NCBI RefSeq assembly: GCF_020745735.1
Contig: NW_026867533.1
Location: 62,001 to 126,000, forward strand
Reading direction: 5' to 3'
Source of the DNA: Hemiscyllium ocellatum
Taxonomy: Eukaryota
Length of the DNA: 64,000 nucleotides
The position numbers were made by a program, and so were the translations under genes. Under the pieces are notes generated by a model. That model worked only from the letters and a program-made list of their open reading frames with translations, was not told where the DNA came from and made no database searches. Shown here piece by piece: positions 1,271 through 46,241 of the stretch (position 1 is the first letter of the stretch; each line of letters starts with the position of its first letter).

Positions 1271-2495
1271 AGAAGGTTAAAGGATGATCTGATTAAGGTC
1301 TTTATGATATTACCAGGAAAAGACAGAGTAAATTAAGATAAACTATTTCTACTGATTGGGGATTCTAGAATTAGGGTACATAGTCTGAGAATTAGGGCCT
1401 GACCACTCAGGAGAGATGTTCAAAAGCACTTCTACATACAAGGTGGGAGATATTTAGAACTTTTTTCTCAAATGGCAGTGAATGTTAGATTAGTTGATTT
1501 TCAATCTGTGATAGGTAACATTTTGTTATGAGGGGATCTTGACCAAAGGCAGCTTTGGCACTTAAGTGTAGGTAGGCTATGGCTTATCACAATTAATACG
1601 ATATTAACAAAATGTGAACTAACAATTTACACTATAAATCTAATGAACTGTCTTGTGCTTTAGCTTAACTCTAATTAACCTTAGGATGCTGACGTCAGCG
1701 TGTACAAGGGGGCATAACTACAAATTGAGGGTGATAGATTTAAAACAAATGTCAGAGGCAGGTTCTTTACACAGAGAGTGGTAAGGGTGTAGAATGTCCT
1801 ACCTGCTAATGTAGTCAACTCAGCCACATTAGGGATTTAAACAATCCTTCGATCAGCACATGAATGATTTTGGGATAGTGGAACGAGCTGAGAATAGTTC
1901 ACAGGTCGGCGCAACATCGAGGGGCGAAAAGCCTGTTCTGCGCTGTATTGTTCTATGTTCTATGTTCTCTATGTTCTATAATCTACATGATGATGATCAT
2001 CTAGTCATCTTCTCCTGCTGGTTTCAGGCATGTCTTCACGTGGTTGGTCTCAGGTTACCGCTCCTGAGGATGGTCTTGCAATGATCCTTACACTTTGAGG
2101 ATTCTCCCAAAAGGGTATAAAGACTTCAGCATCCACCAATACATTGATCAGGAAGCCATCTCTAAGTAAGGGCTAAGGCGCCCCTGCGTATGGTAAGCAG
2201 CTTAATTTTTCCAGTTGTCCTGGGGATGATATTCAGGTAAATTCAACTCAGTTGAAATTCAAGTGTATATTGTATTGTCTACAGCTGCTGAGTCAATTGT
2301 ATACTGTCTGTCTGTAGCTGCAGTCTCCCTGGATTCTGCACTTTTGGTTAAAGCTTGTCTCAATTTCCCAGCATGCCTCACTTATTGTCCATTTCTCATA
2401 AGTCCACCATTTTGAGTGGCCTGCCTGGCCACAAGGTCCTTCAGCTCTCCAAGTCTGCGCCAACTCATTTCGCCCTTCTATACTAAAACCGTCCT

Positions 2496-4686
2496 CACAG
2501 AACATAGAACAATACAGCACAGAACAGGCCCTTCGGCCCACGATGTTGTGCCGAACATCTATCCTAGATTAAGCACCCATGCATGTACCTATCCAATTGC
2601 CGCTTAAAGGTCGCCAATGATTCTGACTCTACCACTCCCACGGGCAGCGCATTCCATGCCCCCACCACTCTCTGGGTAAAGAACCCACCCCTGACATCTC
2701 CCCTATACCTTCCACCCTTCACCTTAAATTTATGTCCCCTTGTAACACTCTGTTGTACCCGGGGGAAAAGTTTCTGACTGTCTACTCTATCTATTCCTCT
2801 GATCATCTTATAAACCTCTATCAAGTCACCTCTCATCCTTCGCCGTTCCAATGAGAAAAGGCCGAGAACTCTCAACCTATCCTCGTACGACCTATTCTCC
2901 ATTCCAGGCAACATCCTGGTAAATCTTCTCTGCACCCTCTCCAAAGCTTCCACATCTTTCCTAAAGTGAGGCGACCAGAACTGCACACAGTACTCCAAAT
3001 GTGGCCTAACCAAAGTCCTGTACAGCTGCAACATCACTTCACGACTCTTGAATTCAATCCCTCTGCTAATGAACGCTAATACACCATATGCCTTCTTACA
3101 AGCTCTATCCACCTGAGTGGCAACTTTCAAAGATCTTTGTACATAGACCCCAAGATCCCTCTGTTCCTCCACCTGACTAAGAACCCTACCGTTAACCCTG
3201 TATTCCGCATTCTTATTTGTTTTTCCAAAATGGACAACCTCACACTTGGCAGGGTTGAACTCCACCTGCCACTCCTCAGCCCGCTCTGCATCATATCTAA
3301 GTCCCTTTGCAGCCGACAACAGCCCTCCTCACTGTCCACAACTCCACCATCCTCACTGTCCACAACTCCACCAATCTTCGTATCATCTGCAAATTTACTG
3401 ACCCACCCTTCGACTCCCTCATCCAAGTCATTAATAAAAATTACAAACAGCAGAGGACCCAGAACTGTTCCCTGCGGAACTCCACTTGTAACTGGGCTCC
3501 AGGCTGAATATTTACCATCTACCACCACTCTCTGACTTCGGCCGGTTAGCCAGTTTTCTATCCAATTGGCCAAATTTCCCTCTATCCCATGCCTCCTGAC
3601 TTTCCGCATAAGCCTACCATGGGGAACCTTATCAAATGCCTTACTAAAATCCATGTACACTACATTCACTGCCCTACCCTCATCCACATGCTTGGTCACC
3701 TCCTCAAAGAATTCAATAAGACTTGTAAGGCAAGACCTACCCTTCACAAATCCGTGCTGGCTGTCCCTAATCAAGCAGTGTCTTTCCAGATACTCATAAA
3801 TCCTATCCCTCAGTACCCTTTCCATTACTTTGCCTACCACAGAAGTAAGACTAACTGGCCTGTAATTCCCGGGGTTATCCCTATTCCCTTTTTCGAACCG
3901 GGGCACAACATTCGCTACTCTCCAGTCCCCTGGTACCACCCCTGTTGACAGTGAAGACGAAAAGATCATTGCCAACGGTACTGCAATTTCCTCTCTTGCT
4001 TCTCACATAATCCTAGGATATATCCCGTCAGGCCCGGGGGACTTGTCTATCCTCAAGTTGTTCAAAATGTCCAACACATCTTCCTTCCTAACAAATATCT
4101 CTTTTAGCTTACCAGTACGTTTCACACTCTCCTCTTCAACAATACGGTCCCTCTTGTTGGTAAATACTGAAGAAAAGTACTCATTCAAGACCTCTCCTAT
4201 CTCTTCCGACTCAATACACAATCTCCCACTACTGTCCTTGATCGGACCTACCCTCGTTCTCGTCATTCTCATGTTTCTCACATAAGCATAAAATGCCTTG
4301 GGGTTATCCTTGATCCTATCCGCCAAGGATTTTTCATGCCCTCTCTTAGCTCTCCTAATCCCTTTCTTCAGGTCCCTTCTGGCTATCCTGTATCCCTCCA
4401 CTGCTCTGTCTGAACCCTGTTTCCTCAACCTTATGTAAGCCTCCTTCTTCCTCTTTACTAGACATTCAACCTCCCTCGTCAACCAAGGCTCCCTCACACG
4501 ACCATTTCTTTCCTGCCTGATAGGTACATACATATCAAGGACACGTCGTATCTGCTCCTTGAAAAAGTTCCACATTTCCACCACATCCTTCCCTGACAGC
4601 CTATGCTCCCAACTTATGCTCCTCAAATCCTGTCTTACAGCATCGTAATTTCCCTTCCCCCAATTGTATTCCCCCACAGGATCCAT
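2496..4686 (-). mobile_element. Young 5'-truncated CR1 LINE (ORF2 RT region to 3' tail)
   Basis: ORFs 4003-4686, 3127-3975 and 2564-3319 give [45 protein letters not shown]. One TGA (4003-4005), one frameshift (about 3290), an in-frame 24-bp duplication, and a TTCTATG-type tail at about 2500. Confidence 0.93.
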
Positions 4687-8620: not shown

Positions 8621-11600
8621 TGACTAAGTGCACATCTCTCCCTCTTTTAGCATCTTCACAGTTGCATGTGAGTAGTTTTGGACCCAATATTTAAGGAAAG
8701 CTATTATTTCATTGGAGGCAGTTCCAGAACATTGATGTGGGTGATCCCTGATCAAGAGGAAAAGGCTAAACAGGCTGAGAATTTAGAAGAATGCGATATG
8801 ATCTCATTGCAACATATAGGGTTCTTAAGGGACTTGACAGGGTAAATGCTGAGAGGATATTATCCCTCACGGGAGAGTCGAGGACCAGAGGGGATGGTCT
8901 CATAATGAAGGGTTGACAATTTAAGACTGAGATGCAGAGGAATTTGTTCCTAGGTTTGAGAGTCTTTGGAACTCCTCATTACATAGAGCTGTGGGAGTAA
9001 CGTCCCTGTCTATATTTAAGGCTGAGATCAATTCTTGAGCAGTAGGAGAATTGAGGTAATAAGAAAATACAGAAAAGTAAATAGTGTGGAATGTCGTGTC
9101 AGCAATGATCCTAATGAACGATGGAGCAGACTTAATGAGCCAAATGGTCTGTTCCTATTCCTATTTCTTATGGTTTAGGACCTTGAGCTATAATTAACCT
9201 ATATCATGTTCTCCTTTCCCACAACATCACTCACATTTTCCATTGCTGTGACCTCAGGCACATTAGTCGAAAGTGGATGCAAGGAGAACATCTACAGAAG
9301 TCTGTGCCTGGCATTAGGAACCTATTGGAAGTAGATTGTTCCTATTGGACACTGGCCTATGTTATATCTCAGCAGGGGCCAAGTAGCTGGTGTCATGGAA
9401 GTTAAATTGACTCGACTCAAATGCTAGCAAGAGCATAGACAAAGCTTTATTGTAACCTCTACAGGGGGCTAATAGATTTGGCAAAAATGTCTTATATAAG
9501 GGCCCTGAACAAGTTTCACATATTCTCTTTATACTATTTTTTGCTTATTCTTATCACAAGCTCAAGCACAAGGGTTGGGAACATTCAAGCCTCTTCCTGC
9601 CCACCCCCCATTCTTCACTCCCTCCAAAATCATTGCCATGGGTCTCCAGAGTCTGGTGACATTTGATGAAATATGCCTACATATTTGAAGAAATATGGCT
9701 ATGGATTAGGACCGGCTCCTGGTCTCCTCGCCTTGGTCTATCTCCCATACAATGTCGCTATTGAATGCTTTGCACTTTTTATAATTTAAGTTGGCCAGAG
9801 GTCATGTAAATCCACGGAGTCAGGCACATTCCCTAGTAATAGGTATTTGTTTGAATCAAGCTTATAAAGTGTTTTCATGGCAAATTCAATACAGGCAGCA
9901 TCACATCCACACCGTTTCACTGATGTCATCAATTAACAGAAGTCTAAATACTGAAGTGATTACACTGCTCTGGGTCAGAGACCTGTAATTATTCCTGGGT
10001 TTATTATGGTCAGATCTTTCAGTAAACTGCAAATGGATGAAGGAGCAGGAAAGGAAAAGGAATAAAATTCTCTTTTCAACAAAACAGCCAATACTGACTA
10101 ATATGACATGAACCTTCAGTAAATTTGAATAATGAGAAATTACTATGTTTGGATTCTGAATCAAACATTGAGTTACAAATTGTGCTTGTAAGGGTTAAAT
10201 TAGCAATCGTGTATAAAGACCTTGAGCTTCTTGTTCCGAGATAAGGAAGTTAAACTTGAATCCTTGCATTTGCGATGTTTTCCCTCTGTCCGAGTGCAGA
10301 CAAGTCTTTATTTGACCTCCTTACTCCCCACCCACCAGCTCCTGCCCTCACAGCCAAAACTCTCGATGTTGATAAGAAGTGCCAAATATTAACTTTGTGA
10401 TCATGCACATATTTAAAATGATTTAACTGGTATTTTATGACCAGTTGCGGCTGTGAAAATGTTGACACCTCACACTGTGAATTAAGTGGAAATCTAAGTT
10501 TGTCAGAAATTAAAGGAAACAAATTGGCAAGTAAGTTTGGTCTAATATCAGATTAAATCTGCTATATTAGGGATCCAATAATGAGAAAGGGAAGTGCTGG
10601 CAGTTGTTGTCAGATTATGTCAGGATTGCCTCACGAAGGCATCCCACGGCAGCGTGGTGAACACAAACACAGATGAGAACAATTACAGAAAACAACTGCT
10701 TGACTGGTTCAGAAATGCTTGGCTTATTTTGAGAGACCAATCTTAAATCAGCATAAAACATCCAAAGTTTTTCAATGGTCTGTTGAATTTTGCCTGTCTT
10801 TCAGTATAAAGGTATTGCATAGCCCAGAAATGGCTTTAAACAAGGATGACGTACTGTGACATACTGAAGAAATGGTTTTCTCTTTTTTTCGCTCTGTGCT
10901 GTCTCTTCCACACCCCAACCCCTGCATTCCCTCATTGTGGTGTACTGTAGACATCCTGTGGAAGTCAAAAGAACCCCATACCAACACGACCAAGATGGTT
11001 CATGATGCATCTTGAAAACAAATAAAATCCCAGCAGCATTTTTTAGATCATAGGACAGCATTGTCAATACACTCCAGGGGGATGGGTGGTGAAGACAGCA
11101 ATAACTAGTTACATTAGCAAGATTACAAGACTGGGATACAAGGTATACTGCTTTGTCATTACCCCCTCATTAACTTCACCATTGCAAGGCTAAAATCGGG
11201 AGCATTGGAATCCTCACTGCTCACCTGGTGATTTGTTTAATTGCAACAATAGTCAAGAAGCTCAATATGATCAAAGAGAGAGCAGTTTGATTGACTGGCA
11301 AAAGAACTAACGTACCTAATTTCCACTCCCTTCACCATCACTGAGCTACGATGTTGGGCTACCTAGCACTTACACTGTACGGAATGAACTGCAGCAACTC
11401 ATTAGACTTACACTGAAAGGACCTTTCCTGTCTATAATCTCTATTTCTGAACAGAACAATAATCAGCTAAAGGTCTATTCCACCTGATTCTGACTTTGCA
11501 TGGATATCTCTGTTCTTTTATTATCACTATGGCAAAATAATGCGATTTATTAAAATTGCAGTCATTGACTAACTTAGGAAAACTAGTCGACCAGGCTTGG

Positions 11601-12639
11601 AATATTGAATCTCAAGTCTGTGATTTCTTTTTTTGTTAAATTGCTTTGGACTTAATTCTGAATAAGTTTACTGATGTTAAATGAGTTAATTTGTGCTCTT
11701 TGATGAATTGCAGTTCTGGAAACATTGTCAGTGCAAACAGTGAGGAAAATGGGAATGCAGATTCTCCTGGATCAAGTGAAGTAATTGCAAAGTAAGCTTA
11801 GTTGCATGCATGACTAAGTTAGTCATTATATCAGAATATGACAAACCATTAGGAAATAACTGGTGAGCTGGTAGTTTATGCAATGTTATACAACGATCAA
11901 TGGTAACAACTCGGAGGCAATGATTTGATCAGCTCTCAAAGAGGAACTTGCCGATGTTCACTCCCAAGTCCTTTTACTATGTGATACTGCAAAACCTCTC
12001 CTTATGAAAATTGTAGATTCCTTTTGAAGACCTCAGTTGAAGCTGCCTCCACCACTAAACTATCAGGCAGAACACTCCAGTTTCCGAGCAATGCTGTTTT
12101 TAAGAACAGTTTTCCTTGTAACCGTTGTTTTCTTTTTTTTGCTGATCAAGTTAAATCCACTGATCCTTTTCTTCTCAAGCCTTTTTAAAATATAATCCGC
12201 ACAGTATGGAAACAGGCCACTTGGCCCAACAAATCCACACCAACCCTCCAATCCAAATGCATTCTCCTACCCTTTTACGCTACTCTATCCAAATCCCTCA
12301 TGATTTTGAACACTTTTAAAATGAATTCTTCATCTTCTGTTCTCAAACTATCCACATAGTTCTCCAGTTGCTCATCTCTGGTACCATTTTTGTGTACCTT
12401 TTGTGCACCTTCTCAAATCCCTTCCTGAAGCGTGCTGCATAAATACTAGACATGAGGGAAAAGCATGTTTATAACTATTTGTCATAATTTCCTTCTTTTG
12501 CATACCACTGTCTTATTTATAATGTTCAGAATCCTAATGATATCTTCAATCTGCAATCTGAGGAAGTTGACAATTTAAGTTCACGAGAAAAGAAAGTGAC
12601 AGTCAACAAGTAAGTTTGATCCAATGTATGACCATGTTA

Positions 12640-16949: not shown

Positions 16950-18090
16950 AGTCTATTTAAACCCAAACTCTGGATCAGATACGTCGATGACACCTTTGTA
17001 ATCATCAAAAACACAGAAATAGAAAAAACACACCGAATCATCAACGCCACACTCACAGGAATACGATTCACGAGAAAAGAGGAAAAGGATAGGCAACTCC
17101 CATTCCTAGACGTGTTAGTAGAGAGAACAACCAACGGAGAATTCACCACAAGGGTACACAGGAAACCAACACACACGGACCAAGTCCTAAACTATGAAAG
17201 TAACCACCCCAACACACACAAACAAAGCTGCATCAGGACACTATTCAAAAGAGCCACAACACACTGCAGTACACCAGAACTGCGAAAAGAGGAAGAGGAA
17301 CACCTATACAAGGTATTCGCCAAAAACGGATACCCATGCAACTTTATCACCAGATGCCTAAGAGATAGACCACGGAACGAGGACATGCCACAACCAAAAG
17401 GACTAGCCACACTACCATACGTCAGGAGCGTCTCAGAACTGACAGCCAGACTACTGCGACCCTTAGGACTCATAACAGCACACAAGCCAACTTCCACACT
17501 CAGACAACAACTCACTAGAACAAAGGACCCAATAGCCAGCACGAGCCAAACTAACGTAGTTTACAAAATACCATGCAAGGACTGCACAAAACACTATATA
17601 GGACAAACAGGAAGACAGCTAACAATCCGCATCCATGAACATCAGCTAGCCACAAAACGACACGACCAGCTATCCCTAGTAGCCATACACTCAGACAACC
17701 AGGAACATGAATTTGACTGGGAAAACACTACCATCAAAGGACAAGCCAGACAGAACAGCCAGGGAATTCCTAGAGGCATGGCATTCATCCACAAACTCCA
17801 TTAACAGACACATAGACCTGGACCCCATATACAAACCACTACAGCTGAAACTGACACCCGGAAGCGGCAAGAACATCCATCAACAGACACATCGACCTGG
17901 ACCCCACATACAAACTAGTACAGCTGAAACTGACACCCGGAAGCGGCAAGAACAAACCACTATAAATACTGGAAGAAACATCAAAGCAGCGCTTCACAGG
18001 AGGCTCGAATAGCACTGATGATGTTCCCTAGCCAGGGAACGAAACGTTTGCAGCAAAAACTTCCAGCTCGGCGAACAGAACCACAACATC
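16950..18090 (+). mobile_element. 5'-truncated Penelope-like retroelement (Poseidon-type): RT C-terminus, GIY-YIG endonuclease, 3' pseudo-LTR
   Basis: Open frame from about 16950 with WIRYVDDTF (RT motif), then NVVYKIPCKDCTKHYIGQTGRQLTIRIHEH (GIY-YIG). Frameshift near 17750; 79-bp tandem duplication 17797-17875/17876-17954. Confidence 0.9.
18012..18051 (+). ncRNA. Minimal type I hammerhead ribozyme in the PLE pseudo-LTR
   Basis: GCA-CTGATGA-T-GTTCCCT-AGCC-AGGGAAC-GAAA-CG-TT-TGC: intact core, 7-bp stem II, palindromic stem III (AAACGTTT), stem I GCA/TGC. Confidence 0.75.
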
Positions 18091-25645: not shown

Positions 25646-25773
25646 CTTCACCAGAGTGACGGCAGCGCTGTAGAAAATACTCAGGAAGAACAAGGTGATG
25701 AACGTGGAAGCAGTTGTCCAGATGTTGCTGTTATCATCCTCATAGTCTTCAATCCAAGTGCGATCTATTGAAT
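25646..25773 (-). CDS. IGHM: IgM TM1 exon
   Basis: Acceptor TTCATAG|AT; DSIDRTWIEDYEDDNSNIWTTASTFITLFFLSIFYSAAVTLVK with the CART-type transmembrane motif; phase-0 donor AAG|GTGAGA. Confidence 0.95.
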
Positions 25774-28502: not shown

Positions 28503-28508
28503 TTTATT
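28503..28508 (-). terminator. AATAAA poly(A) signal for secretory mu mRNA
   Basis: AATAAA on the minus strand about 37 nt after the secretory stop codon. Confidence 0.75.
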
Positions 28509-28544: not shown

Positions 28545-28936
28545 TTATTGACATGAATTAACAGTGTCCATCAGTGCAAGTGAAATGTTTACGAAACTCG
28601 GTTTACCGCTGGATTTATCGACTGTTCTGTTGATGATCTTCAATGGAATCGCTTCATGTCCCACCACACAGGAGTAAGAAGCACCGCTGGCCCACTCCTC
28701 CGCTGTAATGGATAACAGGCTGTAGATGAAGAAGGAAGTGTTGTCACTCTCCGCCATCACCTCGGTGTTCTTGTAGTTACTGGGATTCACCGGCTTGTCA
28801 TTGTTTGTCCACTTGACGAAGATCTCTCGGGGGGAGAAACCTCTCACTAAACAGGTGAGGGAGAGAAACCTCTGAGCGGAGATTTCTTCTGTTGGTGGCA
28901 GGAGGACCGACACTGATGGCTCCAGCGGATTAATCA
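28545..28936 (-). CDS. IGHM: IgM CH4 exon plus secretory tailpiece (internal donor at 28606 for the membrane form)
   Basis: Acceptor TGCAG|TG; [43 protein letters not shown]...[24 protein letters not shown]|GTAAA. Tail [19 protein letters not shown] has the NIS glycosylation site and penultimate Cys. Confidence 0.96.
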
Positions 28937-29391: not shown

Positions 29392-29700
29392 CTTTCTCCT
29401 TGTGGATGGAGTCTCTCAGCGGAGTCGGTAGATTCTGATGGTACACCACACATTCAAAAGTAACGCCACTCAGCCAGGCTTCAGTAGAAATGTCTAATTT
29501 GCTGATCATGCTGTCGGGATTCTGTCCAGGCTGGTCAGCAATCTCGGATTTCAGAGGCTTCTTTTCTTGTTTCCAGGTCACGTTGACTCCAGAAGGAAGA
29601 TTGGACACAACGCAGGTTAACGTCACTGTCGCCTCCAGTAAGACTTGTTCTACTGGCGGTGGGAGGATTTTAACGGTGTTAGGGTGGCACTCGGTATCTT
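29392..29700 (-). CDS. IGHM: IgM CH3 exon
   Basis: Acceptor TTCATAG|AA, 309 nt: [43 protein letters not shown]...[22 protein letters not shown], donor G|GTGAGC. Confidence 0.95.
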
Positions 29701-31398: not shown

Positions 31399-31710
31399 CC
31401 TGGAGTGCGGTGATGTTTTTACTTTGAACGTTCTCTTCATGAGTGACCTGGCAGGTATAGACTGCGCTGTTGTACCATTCACCATAAGGGACCATCAGCC
31501 GACTCGTCACCGAGAAGTTCCCGTTCGCCTCACACACGGGAGACGTGAAGAAGCCAGAATCCAAGAGTCGGCCATTTTTCAACCAACTCACGGAGATTGA
31601 CTTCGGATGGAAATCGATGATTGAACAGACAATGGTTGCAAACTTGCTGCTTGCGATTTCTTCACTGGAGCTCACAGTTAGGAGAAGAGTTGGTGGGAGA
31701 GGACCTGTAC
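31399..31710 (-). CDS. IGHM: IgM CH2 exon
   Basis: Acceptor CCTAAAG|GT, 312 nt: [47 protein letters not shown]...[20 protein letters not shown], donor G|GTAAGA. Confidence 0.95.
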
Positions 31711-34800: not shown

Positions 34801-35109
34801 CACATGGCATTTCTTTGCTCTTGTGTGAGTGTGACCCGCTGTGTTCAACCTCACAGTAGATTTTGCTGGGGCAATCTACCGCTGACCCGGGCAGGGTTAA
34901 CTGGCTGCTCAGGGTGTAGGTTCCCTTCTTGTTTCTCACTGATGGGTAAGTCTTCAATCCATCCGTGATTAGCTCCCCACCTTTCTTCCAGGTTACCTTG
35001 GTGACATCAGGGGAATAGTCCATCACCAAACAACCAAAGATTGTCGAATCGGTGTTGTGCTCCTCACAGGAGGAGACCAGGCCATAAAGCGTGGGGGGAG
35101 ATGGTGTCT
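34801..35109 (-). CDS. IGHM: IgM CH1 exon
   Basis: Acceptor TTGTAG|AG, 309 nt: [43 protein letters not shown]...[20 protein letters not shown], donor G|GTACGT. Ig C1-set Cys/Trp/Cys plus the N-terminal Cys expected for light-chain pairing. Confidence 0.95.
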
Positions 35110-35837: not shown

Positions 35838-38075
35838 ATCATAGAACATAGAACAGTACAGCACAGTACAGGCCTTTTGGCCCTCGATGTTGCGCTGCTC
35901 TGACATACTAATATGAAGCCCATCCCACCTACACTATTCCATGTACATCCATATGCCTGTCCAATGACAACTTAAATGTATTTAAACTTGGCAAATCGAC
36001 GACCGTTGCAGGCAAAGCATTCCACACCCTTACTACACAATCAGTAAAGAAACTACCTCTGCCATCTGTCTTATACCTATCTCCCCTCACTTTAAAGTTG
36101 TGTCCCCTCGTGTTTGCCGTCCCCATACTTGGAAATCAGGTCCAGTGAGCCTTCCTCACTTATCACTGCAAGGCAGAATGTTCTCTCTGGGAGGAAGGTC
36201 ACTGCAGCAGCAGCAGCAGCAGCAGCAGCAGCACAGGCAGGAGCTGAGCACTGGGACGGGGAGGATGGCTGTCACGGCTGAATTCAGGCCAATTGGCTGG
36301 AAGTTGAAACATCTCATTTACAATGATCTGAATTCTGGAGGCCTCTGAAAAATGGAGAACCATTAAGATTCAGAGACTTTGGACTGTTACAGCTGAGTAT
36401 TTACGTAAATATGATTTGAGAAATGAACAAGTAATCTTTAACTTTAATAACTATCAAATTGATCCGCAGTTCACCACCAAACCTCATCTCTCAGACTAAC
36501 CACTGCACTTACTCTGCCTAGACCTAAATTTCCACTCACATTGACAAACCCTACCCTGCTATACACCCATTCATGCCCGGAACACACAAGCCCTATCACA
36601 CAAAACACATCCAAGGCAATCCATATTGGTAGTGTAGCTGAGCAGAGAGATCTCGGTTCCCATGTACATAGATCCCTAAAAGTTGCCAGCCAGTTTGATA
36701 GAGTTGTTAAGAAGGCATACTTTGTGCTGGCTTTCATCAATAGAGGGACTGAGTTTCAGAACCACGAGGTTAGGTTGCAGCTGTACAAAACTCTGGTGTG
36801 GCTGCACTTGGAGTATTGTGTACTGTTCTGGTCACCACATTATAGAGAGAATGTGGAAGCTTTGGAAGAGTTCAGAGGAGGTTTACCAGGATGTTGTTTG
36901 GTATGGCGGGAAGGTTTAATGAGGAAAGGATGAGGGTCTTGAAGCTGTTTTTGTTTGAGAGAAGAAGGTTGAGAGGTGACTTAATTGAGACATAAAAGAT
37001 AAACAGAGGGTGGACAGTGAAAGTCTTTTTCCTTGAATAGTGATGGCTAGCAGGAGAGGACATAGATGACAGAGGTTGTTTCTTTACTCAGAGAGTAGTA
37101 GGGCCATGGAACACACTGCCTGCAACAATAGTACACTCGCCAACTTTAAGGGCATTTAAAAGATCATTGGATAAACATATGGATGAAAATGGAATAGTGT
37201 AGGATAGATAGGCTTCAGATTGGTTCCACAGGTCAGCGCAACATTGAGGGCTTGAAGGGCCTGTACTGCACTGTAATGTTCTATATTCTATATTCCAGAT
37301 GGACATATGATCTCATTTCCTTTCAGTCATTTACACTCCTGCCACCCCGCACCTGGCCCATGGCGAATCTGGCCCTGACTGGACCTGGCACCATCATTTT
37401 CACAACCTCTGACAAAAGCCCACTACCCAAGACATGACCTCAGCCCTTGATCACTGACCTCTCATCTTACCCAAGACAACCTGTGCACATTGCATCCTAG
37501 CTCCGCTGGCATCTGTGCTTTACAACCTACCATTTTGCCAGACTCCGAGCTTTGCATTTTGACAACACGTCCACCTGTCATTTCATTCCAGTGACCTTCC
37601 ACCCCCGAAACATCCTGGCACTCTGCCCACCTCTACACAAACCAGCCTGGCAAAGACAGACCTCCTGCATTTCAGCTCAAACTACCCCTCACCTACCAAG
37701 CACAATTCGACCAAATTATCCTGTGACTATTACCATTTACCTTGATGCCACCTTTTGCCAGACAGAGTGCACGCAAGCTTACCCAGCAGCCAGCCAACCA
37801 GCCTCCCAGCCCAAACTCTCCCACATGCCCAATCTAGCCCCTCACTTGCTCACCACCTTCCAACTTTAAGCCTCCTCCACCATAAAGTCAGTGAGTCATA
37901 AAGTCGTAAAGCACAGAAACAGTTCCTTTGGTCCAGCCCAGCCATGCTGACCAGAGTTCCCAAATTAAACTCATTCCACTTGCCTGCCTTTGGCCCATAT
38001 CCATCCAGACCGATCCAGTTCCTGTAGCTGTTCAAATGTCTTCTCAATGTGGGACCTATCTCTGCACTTACCGCT
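35838..38075. mobile_element. Cluster of CR1 3' fragments in the J-CH1 intron (about 35838-36110 minus, 36625-37295 plus, 37895-38075 minus)
   Basis: ATAGAACATAGAAC tails; GSVAEQRDLG..LEYCVLFWSPHYR; RGHNFKVRG. Confidence 0.7.
36205..36231. repeat. (CAG)9 microsatellite
   Basis: Nine perfect CAG units. Confidence 0.95.
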
Positions 38076-42828: not shown

Positions 42829-44440
42829 TGCGAGTTCATGAGTGGATTACTTTAATTAATTCAAAATTTGACCTTGGTTACATAACTCACTATAGCAGTT
42901 GTTTCCGGAAGAATGACTCTTCAGTTGATATTTTGATGTAAAATGTAACTATTTATTTAAAATGCACAGATTGGGAACACCTAAAGTACTGTGCAGGTTA
43001 AATAATTCAGTTAATGTTTTATTTTTATCCTGCAAATCCATTTTAATCAGGGACATAACAATTAATTAACTCAAGTTATGTGTGAAACTGATCAAAGCAG
43101 TGAACCTGATCTGTTCTTCATGGAATTGAGCAGAATTTCCAAATGGGCTTTGCCAATGATCTTTTCCAGCCAGAAAAATATGTATGTCGTGTACAGCGGA
43201 ATTGAAAGGTGTTTCTTGATCAATTATAGCACAGTCATGGCATTTTTGCTCAAGAGCAAGAACTATTAGAACATTAGACTTTTGAAATTCTATTTATATT
43301 TCTCTATGACTTGTAAACTGTTTAAAGACAGACGTTGTGATTTAACTAGATAGTTGAGTTTTGAATTTGGATTGTAAAGCATGGATTAGATTAATCCTTA
43401 ATTATTTATTTTACGTAAAAATAGCGCCTGAAGATATCTGTTTTCCCTTCATTTCTAAAACCTTTGCGATTTGCCTTTCACTTAATAATAGACTCTATGA
43501 AATTTTAACTCGCATGCTGATTGCATTGAATGAGGAAAGAGCAGTTCACTGTCACCAACCGTGTTAACATTGCAAAAACAATGTAGAAACCAGAAACAGT
43601 TTCCCAAATATAACACATTTAATGTTACCCAAGCACAGTCCCTCCTCAACAGATCAACGATCACCAGATCACAACACGGTGTGTTTGCAGCAGAACTAGC
43701 TCTGCAAACACTTTCAACAGAACCAAGAACATGATGTAACCTCACAAAAAAACCAAATTGAAGTCTAACAAAGCTGCTCAGAATCAAGCAAAATAGTGAT
43801 TAAATTGAATAGAAATAACAGGTCATAAAGCAACCTTGTTGGTGAGGGGACTTAACACTTAAAACTGTAACGTTTCTGGCAATAGTTCAATTTACTTCCA
43901 ACCTGCACACCCTTCCTGATCATGACAATCTTGTGCAGCGCACAGTCGAGTGGGGTTGAAAGCATATATTGATTAATCACTTCATGGTCAAAGCAAAATT
44001 ACTGAATGGACAAATATTACCACATTATAATTTTAAGTTAGTTTCAATTATGTAATCTGATCAATTCTGCAGTTTCAGATTTTAGTCCCAAATTTTATTT
44101 TGAATGAGGCTACTCAAAACAAAATTCAGTTAGTTTACAATTAGAACGGAGTTTTTTAAAAAAATCAATGCATTAAAAACTCGTTTTTTTTTCATTTCTC
44201 ACACTTCCGGGTTTCTGCCTTAAGTTGTTTTTCAGACCGTTACAAATAGATGTAATGTTTTCAATCAAGCAGATAAAAATGTGTCATATAAGTTTAACAA
44301 ATGCAGAAATGATTCATGAAAAACAAAAGAACTTCACAAATATTGGTAATGAAAAGTATTCCAGAGAGTCAATCTCCTCACCAGAAAGAAAACACCAATT
44401 CAGAAAGCATGAAAACGCAGATCAATTTCACAAACTGAAT

Positions 44441-44730
44441 AAGAATCCAATCAACTCAATTCAACAGAATCAAGGAAAATAAAATCAGAATCCAATCAAC
44501 TCAAAACAACAGATTTGAATGAAACATAATCAGAATCCAACAAATTCAATTCAACAGAATCAATTAAAACAATTCCAAAAGCCAATCAACACAATTCAAC
44601 AAAACCAAGTAAAAACAAAGTCAGAATCCAATCAACACAGTTCAACCCAATCAACTAAAACAAAGCCAAAATCCAATCAACTCAATTCAACAGAATCAAG
44701 TAAAACAAACTCAGAATCTAATCAACAGAA
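44441..44730. repeat. Degenerate 45-bp tandem repeat, about 6.5 copies, in the J-CH1 intron
   Basis: Units close to CAGAATCCAATCAACTCAATTCAACAGAATCAAGTAAAACAAANT run from 44441 to a partial unit at 44712; period 45 with one 46-nt unit. Confidence 0.9.
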
Positions 44731-45244
44731 TGCAATATAGCACCTCAAGAAACTTTTATGACAGTTTCTAACCTGCTTGTCATCAACAAAATTAACAAAA
44801 TAAATGAGATAATATAATCATGGTAAGAACATATATTCAAGAAATGAATAATGATATTTTAGCATATTTTAGTCATGTTTGGTAATATCTTGAACGTCTT
44901 TGAATTCTTAGGGTTTGTTGTTGATAATAAAACTCACAGTCAGGGTGTCACTGGCATTAAACATTATTTATAGCTGACTGATTAAGAGACATTAGGTGTT
45001 TCAAGTAACCCAGCCACATAGAATGTCCATCTGATCAAAAAAAAGAGATACACCGAGCAACTGACTCCATCATCACCATTTTAACTATTTGCTAAGCATT
45101 AACTGAAGTCTATAATCCGTCTGAACAAAAATCAATCCGAACCAAACCAAACTCAGCACAGAATCTGAGTTTCATTTAATTCAGAAATTAGTCACATGAA
45201 TAGAAAGTTTTTAAAAAGTCACTAAGAATGTTCAAAGTTCTTAC

Positions 45245-45298
45245 CTGAAGTCACTGTCACCATGGTCCCTTGGCCCCAGTCGCCAACTCCAGCTATAT
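45245..45298 (-). CDS. IGHJ: Joined D(2)-JH exon (IAGVGDWGQGTMVTVTS)
   Basis: ATATAGCTGGAGTTGGCGAC-TGGGGCCAAGGGACCATGGTGACAGTGACTTCAG|GTAAG: WGxG motif and phase-1 donor at 45244. The usual FDY before WG is replaced by a D-like sequence. Confidence 0.92.
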
Positions 45299-45326
45299 CA
45301 CTGTGGGACACATTGTGCCAAATACT
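45299..45326 (+). other. Recombination signal sequence, 12-bp spacer, 5' of the D-J exon
   Basis: Read outward from the coding end: CACTGTG (45299-45305), 12-nt spacer GGACACATTGTG, nonamer CCAAATACT (45318-45326; 6/9 to consensus). The essential CAC is intact. Confidence 0.82.
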
Positions 45327-45627
45327 ATGACAGACTGTAAACTGTAAAATGCAAATAATTTCTTCACTTCCTCGAAAGCAGTGATTCAGACTCCTCTAAA
45401 AATGACTCTGCATTATTTCAGCTTTTACTATTCATTGCATTTTGAAAGCTTGGAATACTTTTCCAGGTTTGGTCTGCATTTAACTTGACAATCAACACGA
45501 AGAAGGTAGAAAAAAATTATACATTTATACAAACTAGCACGACTGGATTGTGTTTAAATTGCATCTCACATTATTTCTCGCTCCTGCCACGGTAGAAATC
45601 ATCAATTTGAGATAAATCCTTATCAGT

Positions 45628-45665
45628 GGTTATTGTATGAGGATGTAGCTGTGCACAGCACTGTG
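45628..45665 (-). other. Recombination signal sequence, 22-bp spacer (23-class), 3' of V(D)
   Basis: Minus strand: CACAGTG (45665-45659), 22-nt spacer CTGTGCACAGCTACATCCTCAT, nonamer ACAATAACC (45636-45628; 8/9 to ACAAAAACC). Confidence 0.93.
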
Positions 45666-45971
45666 ACCCACTTGCACAGTAATAGATGGCGGTGTCTTCG
45701 ATCTTCAGGTTCCCCATGTTCAACGAGAAAATGTTGTTTGAAGTGTCTTTGGACGCAGTAAATCGACCCTTGATCGCTGGTGCATAGTTATTGCTGGATG
45801 GATTCTTGTAGCTAACCAGCCACTCCAGACCCTGGCCGGGAACCTGGCGGATCCAGTGCATCCAGTCGCTGCTGAGATCGAACCCGCTGGTTTTACAGGT
45901 CAGTTTCAGGCTGCCTTCGGGACGGCCAGTCTTTGCCTCTGGCTGGGTCAAAACAATCTCCGACTGGACAC
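45666..45971 (-). CDS. IGHV: VH exon, apparently with a D1 remnant pre-joined at its 3' end (ends ...YYCASG+T)
   Basis: Acceptor TTTTAAAG|GT. Translation [49 protein letters not shown]...[33 protein letters not shown] has the conserved Cys, Trp and YYC and no stop, and is followed directly by an RSS. Confidence 0.97.
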
Positions 45972-46099
45972 CTTTAAAACAGAAAAGAAATAAACCATGA
46001 GCATTAATGCAGATGAAATGATGCCTGAGTCTTTTACATTCCTGAGGTAGACTAACATTGAGACAGTAACAAAGACAGACTTGAACAAAAAACACTCAC

Positions 46100-46148
46100 A
46101 TGATAAGAAAGTCAGTAATAAACTGAGAAAAATTGTCGACACAATCAT
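46100..46148 (-). CDS. IGHV: IgM heavy-chain leader exon (MIVSTIFLSLLLTFLS + phase-1 T; spliced leader ends CVQS)
   Basis: ATG at 46148, hydrophobic signal peptide, donor T|GTGAGT at 46099. Joining to the acceptor at 45971 gives ...[13 protein letters not shown]. Confidence 0.93.
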
Positions 46149-46234: not shown

Positions 46235-46241
46235 ATTTATA
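46235..46241 (-). promoter_or_regulatory. VH promoter TATA box (TATAAAT)
   Basis: TATAAAT about 87 nt upstream of the leader ATG. No ATGCAAAT octamer seen in the proximal promoter. Confidence 0.7.

Follow-up and report, generated by a model that had tools for sequence, protein, structure and literature searches.

A probable VD-DJ IgM heavy-chain cluster in the assembled genome of Hemiscyllium ocellatum

A 64-kb stretch of the Hemiscyllium ocellatum assembly, analysed at its full length and called the window below, carries an IgM heavy-chain gene on its minus strand. The gene is very probably a cartilaginous-fish IgM mini-locus derived from an ordinary V-D1-D2-J-Cmu cluster by two V(D)J joins that have become fixed in the inherited DNA. 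The V segment runs directly into the end of D1, and the beginning of D2 runs directly into J. Between these two coding ends lies the interval that separates D1 from D2 in unjoined clusters of a close relative, flanked by one pair of recombination signal sequences (RSSs).

Results

Organization of the V region

The 5' part of the gene contains the following elements. L001 and L003 are unjoined IgM clusters of the close relative Chiloscyllium punctatum.

Near 46241, minus strand: TATA-like ATATAAAT, about 90 bp upstream of the leader ATG
46100-46148, minus strand: leader exon 1, with the ATG at 46148, then MIVSTIFLSLLLTFLS plus 1 nt, and the donor GTGAGT at 46099
45666-45971, minus strand: V exon with the fused D1 remnant (VD1), an open V-set domain (Pfam V-set, E = 1e-16)
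45628-45665, minus strand: D1 3' RSS, with the perfect heptamer CACAGTG at 45665-45659, a 22-bp spacer at 45658-45637 and the nonamer ACAATAACC at 45636-45628
45327-45627, minus strand: D1-D2 intergenic DNA, 301 bp, non-coding, aligning with the D1-D2 intervals of both L001 and L003
45299-45326, minus strand: D2 5' RSS, with the nonamer AGTATTTGG at 45326-45318, a 12-bp spacer at 45317-45306 and CACAGTG at 45305-45299
45245-45298, minus strand: fused D2-J coding segment, ATATAGCTGGAGTTGGCGACTGGGGCCAAGGGACCATGGTGACAGTGACTTCAG, encoding (Y)IAGVGDWGQGTMVTVTS, with the donor GTAAGA at 45244

The leader is split, with a 128-bp intron between the leader and V exons, and the region upstream of it is 88-93% identical to L001. 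At its 3' end the VH exon reads TGTGCAAGTGGGT; the exon, from 45971 to 45666, terminates in ...TATTACTGTGCAAGTGGGT (...TAT TAC TGT GCA AGT GGG T), and the VD1 protein end is YYCASG plus T. The TGTGCA-AGTGGGT ending given in the preliminary description is therefore what is seen at this position. Within it, the V part extends up to GCAAG, the AG at 45672-45671 is common to V and D1, and the TGGGT at 45670-45666 comes from D1. The D2-J segment reads ATATAGCTGGAGTTGGCGAC and then TGG GGC CAA GGG ACC ATG GTG ACA GTG ACT TCA G, followed by GTAAGA; the J protein is WGQGTMVTVTS.

The two coding ends are 367 bp apart, or 353 bp if both heptamers are left out. We scanned the 772 bases from 45971 to 45200 and found no CACNGTG or heptamer/nonamer pair beyond the two RSSs; by chance, about 0.1 CACNGTG per strand is expected in 367 bp. 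The same scan shows no RSS between D2 and J, and J has none of its own. A tblastn search with the V exon as query found no second V in the 64-kb window. These results bear out the earlier claim of a single 353-bp spacer with one 22-bp and one 12-bp RSS and no third heptamer, in its coordinates, its spacer lengths and both the 353- and 367-bp figures. The earlier account of JH holds only in part. JH lacks an RSS and is fused to sequence upstream, as described, but the motif displaced by the fusion is not FDY: the unjoined J of the relatives reads YLDYWGQG (ACTATCTTGACTACTGGGG), and it is the LDY part that is replaced here by ...VGD.

Constant region and membrane exons

Downstream of J, the gene continues on the same strand with four constant exons and two membrane exons.

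34801-35109, minus strand: Cmu1 (C1-set, E = 2e-15)
31399-31704, minus strand: Cmu2 (C1-set, E = 2e-18)
29392-29700, minus strand: Cmu3 (C1-set, E = 2e-11)
28545-28936, minus strand: Cmu4 with the secretory tail and stop (C1-set, E = 2e-22); AATAAA at 28508
25646-25773, minus strand: TM1, SIDRTWIEDYEDDNSNIWTTASTFITLFFLSIFYSAAVTLVK, 95% identical to the C. punctatum cluster L004
25498-25506, minus strand: TM2, 9 nt, GTT AAG TGA (V, K, stop), preceded by a pyrimidine tract and CAG

The exons Cmu1-4 are open, have AG/GT borders and are in phase 1. An internal donor in Cmu4, at 28607/28606, serves the membrane form. Cmu4 shares 90% identity with a C. punctatum protein and 62% with Callorhinchus IgH. 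An untrimmed D1-D2 join is in frame (CASGYIAGVGDWGQG) and reads ...YYCASGYIAGVGDWGQGTMVTVTS. With this join, the predicted secreted chain has 574 aa and the predicted membrane chain 599 aa, each with one terminal stop, and Pfam assigns the predicted chain a V-set and four C1-set domains. The four C exons, the tail and both TM exons, which had been called intact, are indeed open, with their splice sites in place, and the frame is closed at TM2. The cluster thus consists of one VH, a J, four Cmu exons, the tail and two TM exons on one strand in about 20 kb. It is collinear with L001 across the J-C intron of about 9-10 kb, at about 89-91% identity.

The window also contains several repeats. The J-Cmu intron contains a 45-bp tandem array (44438-44735; 6.4 copies, 76% matches) 500-800 bp 3' of J, and a similar array, about 77% identical, occupies the same relative place in L001 (12180-12384) and L003 (12259-12472). 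A 79-bp unit present twice at 17797-17954 (93% matches) and a (GCA)10 microsatellite at 36204-36233 look ordinary. At 2564-4686 on the minus strand, where GC skew is strongly negative, three adjacent or overlapping open reading frames of 251, 282 and 227 aa are what is left of a broken LINE-type retroelement; the middle one matches RVT_1 (E = 8.5e-30).

Comparison with unjoined clusters

The joins were mapped against another species, C. punctatum. We compared three of its IgM clusters (L001, L002 and L003), of which L001 and L003 have the ordinary unjoined V-D1-D2-J layout. The C. punctatum IgM paralogues differ among themselves by 11-15%. In L001 and L003 the V ends in GCAAGAGAC, followed by a heptamer, a 23-bp spacer and the nonamer TCAAAAACA. 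D1 is ATACTACAGTGGGT in L001 and ATGCGACAGCGGGT in L003, and its 3' RSS in both is CACAGTG-22-ACAA(A/T)AACC. D2 has the 5' RSS AGTATTTGA-12-CACAGTG and a coding start of ATATA(G/A)CTG; in L001 it reads ATATAGCTG..., with the 12-RSS on the 5' side. J is ACTATCTTGA(C/T)TAC TGGGGCCAAGGG with a 23-RSS on its 5' side, the L001 version being ACTATCTTGACTAC TGGGG with the 23-RSS ahead of it. The unjoined clusters of the relative are themselves partly decayed: the V exon of L003 (10001-10476) is frameshifted and its V heptamer is CGCAGCG, and the D2 of L001 (11296-11340) is without a recognisable 3' 12-RSS.

In a blastn comparison with L001, window positions 46300-45100 fall into three collinear blocks, and L003 gives the same pattern.

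Window 46300-45671, L001 9848-10479: block 1, 92.7% identity; promoter, leader and V to GCAAG
Window 45672-45290, L001 10919-11304: block 2, 91.5% identity, E about 1e-155; last bases of D1, its 22-RSS, the full D1-D2 interval, the D2 12-RSS and the first 9 bases of D2
Window 45286-45100, L001 11511-11697: block 3, 95.7% identity; J and intron

Block 2 matches L003 10841-11216 at 88.2% identity. Two segments of L001 are absent from the window. The first, 10480-10918 (439 bp), extends from the V tip and V RSS through the V-D1 interval to the D1 5' RSS and the 5' part of D1. The second, 11305-11510 (206 bp), extends from the 3' part of D2 and its RSS through the D2-J interval to the RSS and tip of J. 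In each case the edges of the deletion fall inside coding ends and exactly one 12/23 RSS pair has been lost, a footprint characteristic of V(D)J joining and not of random deletion.

The interval that remains also identifies itself by its RSSs and its length. The 22-bp spacer in the window agrees with the D1 3' RSS spacer of L001/L003 at 19/22 positions, the nonamer ACAATAACC is identical to the D1 3' nonamer of L003, and the D2 5' RSS has the same layout as in L001 and L003. By comparison, the V RSS spacer and nonamer of L001/L003 are unrelated to the RSS that follows the V in the window. The D1-D2 interval also agrees in length, with 367 bp in the window against 370 bp (L001) and 356 bp (L003). 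The retained pair is the 22/23-RSS 3' of D1 and the 12-RSS 5' of D2, with both heptamers matching at 7/7 positions and nonamers as in L003 and L001.

At the V-D1 joint, blocks 1 and 2 overlap on the AG at 45672-45671 (GCAAG|TGGGT). The joint can therefore be accounted for by trimming and a 2-nt microhomology, and no N nucleotides are needed. The D2-J joint is less sharply placed. The D2 start ATATAGCTG leads into ...ACTGGGGCCAAGGG without an intervening heptamer. The alignment to D2 covers 45298-45290, that to J and the intron covers 45286-45100, and the boundary lies within 45289-45281. Here 0-3 nt are unexplained and possibly untemplated, and the trimming is ambiguous, the references being from another species and only about 90% identical. 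The segment can be parsed as D2 ATATAGCTGGAG followed by J TTGGCGACTGG..., which differs from the J of the relatives at 2 positions, or as D2 ATATAGCTGGAGTTG, about 2-3 N nucleotides and J ACTGG....

The preliminary description proposed that V-D1 and D2-J are both joined and that the surviving RSSs are those 3' of D1 and 5' of D2. It expected the spacer to match the D1-D2 interval of unjoined clusters, and it read the V-D1 joint as an AG microhomology without N addition. The three collinear blocks agree with each of these points: the spacer matches the D1-D2 interval of L001 at 91.5%, not the V-D1 or D2-J interval, and the AG at 45672-45671 is shared between blocks. At the level of sequence, the comparison supports a V-D1 coding joint and a D2-J coding joint, and hence a VD-DJ layout in the assembled genome.

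Related clusters in other sharks

The V exon has its best protein match, at 85%, in a C. punctatum VH. A V-region search for a VD-DJ orthologue in C. punctatum returned four V genes, none of which ends in CASG. Searching with Cmu4 leads to two further clusters, L004 and L005, both of which stop short of the V-J region and are largely N (L004 is half N). L004 is the closest match to the intron and 3' flank of the window gene, and its 92-93% is the best noncoding identity, a level that points to a source animal that is probably a hemiscylliid but not C. punctatum itself.

The third cluster that we compared, L002, has two inverted IgM V regions, at 11670-11760 and 2180-2300 (minus strand). In both of them V, D1 and D2 are fused in the germline sequence, leaving only a D2-type 12-RSS that faces J (VDD-J). 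The second copy looks like a pseudogene: its J has TGT in place of TGG, and its heptamer is CAATGTG. In Rhincodon typus, a gene model annotated as 'Ig heavy chain V region' (P0008) reads ...YYCARDWGGSLHYWGQETMVTVTA uninterrupted, which suggests that this gene may be a fully joined VDJ in that assembly.

Alternative explanations for the layout

The window on its own would also fit a cluster that never had the usual segments. It has only one 22/12 RSS pair, as in a light-chain-like V-J gene, and one could suppose that the V natively ends in AGTGGGT with a 23-type RSS, and that a D-less or one-D cluster carries a J-proximal element with a 12-RSS. The comparison with the relative makes this hardly credible. 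The RSS after the V and the next 300 bp share homology with the L001/L003 D1 3' RSS and D1-D2 interval, and not with a V 3' flank, and in both unjoined relatives the V ends in GCAAGAGAC and J has a 23-RSS. The block alignment to L001 excludes both a V that natively ends in AGTGGGT and a spacer that corresponds to another interval. It is also very unlikely that the inherited locus is truly V-D1-D2-J and that the joins entered the assembly from reads of a lymphocyte VD-DJ clone, or through misassembly or repeat collapse. Such intermediates do occur in shark B cells and thymocytes (PMC2435157), but an assembly consensus represents the bulk of cells, in which a single lymphocyte clone is unable to dominate. 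Both joins lie on one contiguous and otherwise collinear cluster with no N in the sequence, and a repeat collapse is not expected to stop exactly at coding ends and remove precisely two RSS pairs. The V-D1 joint, moreover, requires no N nucleotides, and joined clusters are found in the independent assembly of a related species, as L002 of C. punctatum. From the assembly consensus and from precedent we infer that the two joins are germline.

Whether a germline VD-DJ cluster is used is a separate question. It is quite possible, though we lean against it, that the cluster is structurally open and yet silent, with B cells failing either to transcribe or to rearrange it. Expression of the joined and partly joined H genes of the horned shark went undetected (PMC2193156), and neighbouring genes in the relative are decaying, as seen in the V frameshift of L003 and the W-to-C change in the J of the second L002 copy. 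The gene also has no canonical octamer upstream of its leader: neither ATGCAAAT nor ATTTGCAT was found within 550 bp at one mismatch or fewer. The exact octamer is likewise absent from the 600 bp upstream of the unjoined L001 and L003. Other points speak against silence. Over about 20 kb the exons, splice sites, RSS heptamers and WGQG motif are all intact; the promoter region is no less conserved than in unjoined L001; and the fully joined nurse-shark gene IgM1gj is expressed in neonates (PMC5192425, PMC4279169). The dN/dS of the V exon against L001 is 0.68, a value that favours neither reading, with the frameshifted L003 left out of the codon comparison; among the returns of the protein searches there was no transcript-derived match to the window V. 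We would expect the gene to be expressed and to rearrange once, in the manner of a light chain.

Discussion

Based on these observations, we suggest the following history for the VD-DJ cluster. Its ancestor would have been an ordinary V-D1-D2-J-Cmu cluster. Two deletional joins, V to D1 and D2 to J, would then have become fixed in the inherited DNA, each with the loss of a 12/23 RSS pair and the DNA between. Both joins were probably made by RAG acting in the germ cells of the ancestor, which is the published explanation for joined genes in sharks (PMC2193156). The present gene consists of VD1, a 22-spacer RSS, 301 bp, a 12-spacer RSS and D2J, with Cmu intact behind them. Its one RSS pair fits the 12/23 rule and is the pair used for the D1-D2 join where clusters are unjoined. 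RAG would thus have to delete only 367 bp, in one step, for a lymphocyte to complete the VDJ exon. The D1-D2 joint would be the only place for junctional diversity, while GCAAGTGGGT and ...GGCGACTGG would stay fixed on either side. In nurse-shark lymphocytes the order in which H-chain segments join is not fixed, and VD-DJ is a natural two-step intermediate (PMC2435157), so a germ-line event frozen at this stage would not be surprising.

Germline-joined shark Ig genes have been noted in general terms (PMC2193156, PMC4279169), with RAG activity in germ cells as their source (PMC2193156). The first finding of partially joined IgM clusters (VD-J, VD-DJ and VDJ) is attributed to work on Heterodontus francisci (Kokubu et al., 1988, as cited in PMC2193156; PMC5192425), and germline VD-DJ clusters are among those that a 2016 review records for cartilaginous fish (PMC5192425). 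The doubt in the preliminary description about whether the configuration is new was thus justified, and the window gene is a clean further example of an already described class. It shares with the partially joined clusters, whose VD-DJ state is named in PMC5192425, the inheritance of some of the three joins and the retention of the remaining RSSs. It differs from them in species and V family; each of its pieces is, moreover, aligned at base level with an unjoined relative, and its whole Cmu region is open. We found no published survey of joining among the IgM clusters of bamboo or epaulette sharks; one study gives the number of IgM clusters in C. plagiosum as 37 but does not describe them (PMC8692893), and another covers linkage only (PMC12227049).

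Two nurse-shark systems resemble the window gene in different ways. The somatic '2R' VD-DJ intermediates have V-D1 and D2-J joined and keep the D1-D2 interval with its 23/12 RSS (PMC2435157). They are, however, somatic, differ from clone to clone and often show N regions and hypermutation, whereas the window copy is assembly sequence with a V-D1 joint free of N. IgM1gj is, like the window gene, a germline-joined IgM heavy chain with a restricted CDR3 (PMC5192425, PMC4279169), but it is fully joined, without RSSs and without Cmu2, in contrast to the one recombinable joint and four Cmu exons seen here. Closer to H. ocellatum, the VDD-J regions of C. punctatum L002 and the pre-joined D of bamboo-shark IgNAR (PMC8692893) show that the same shark family has partly joined clusters, and thus that the joining process recurs in this lineage. 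The joins themselves are not the same: V, D1 and D2 are fused and J is separate in L002, D is fused to D in IgNAR (PMC8692893), and the window has VD-DJ.

It is conceivable, but on balance unlikely, that VD-DJ clusters form an expanded and maintained IgM subclass in this lineage and are not sporadic accidents. If they did, one-step assembly with a semi-fixed CDR3 might provide, for example, a fast and restricted early-life repertoire beside the three-step clusters. Germline-joined shark Ig genes are classic evidence for RAG action in germ cells and for the evolutionary interconversion of split and joined antigen-receptor genes. The VD-DJ cluster described here adds an example and leaves this general picture unchanged. 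Mapped and apparently intact, it offers a substrate for asking whether half-joined heavy chains are used and how much diversity can come from one D1-D2 joint.
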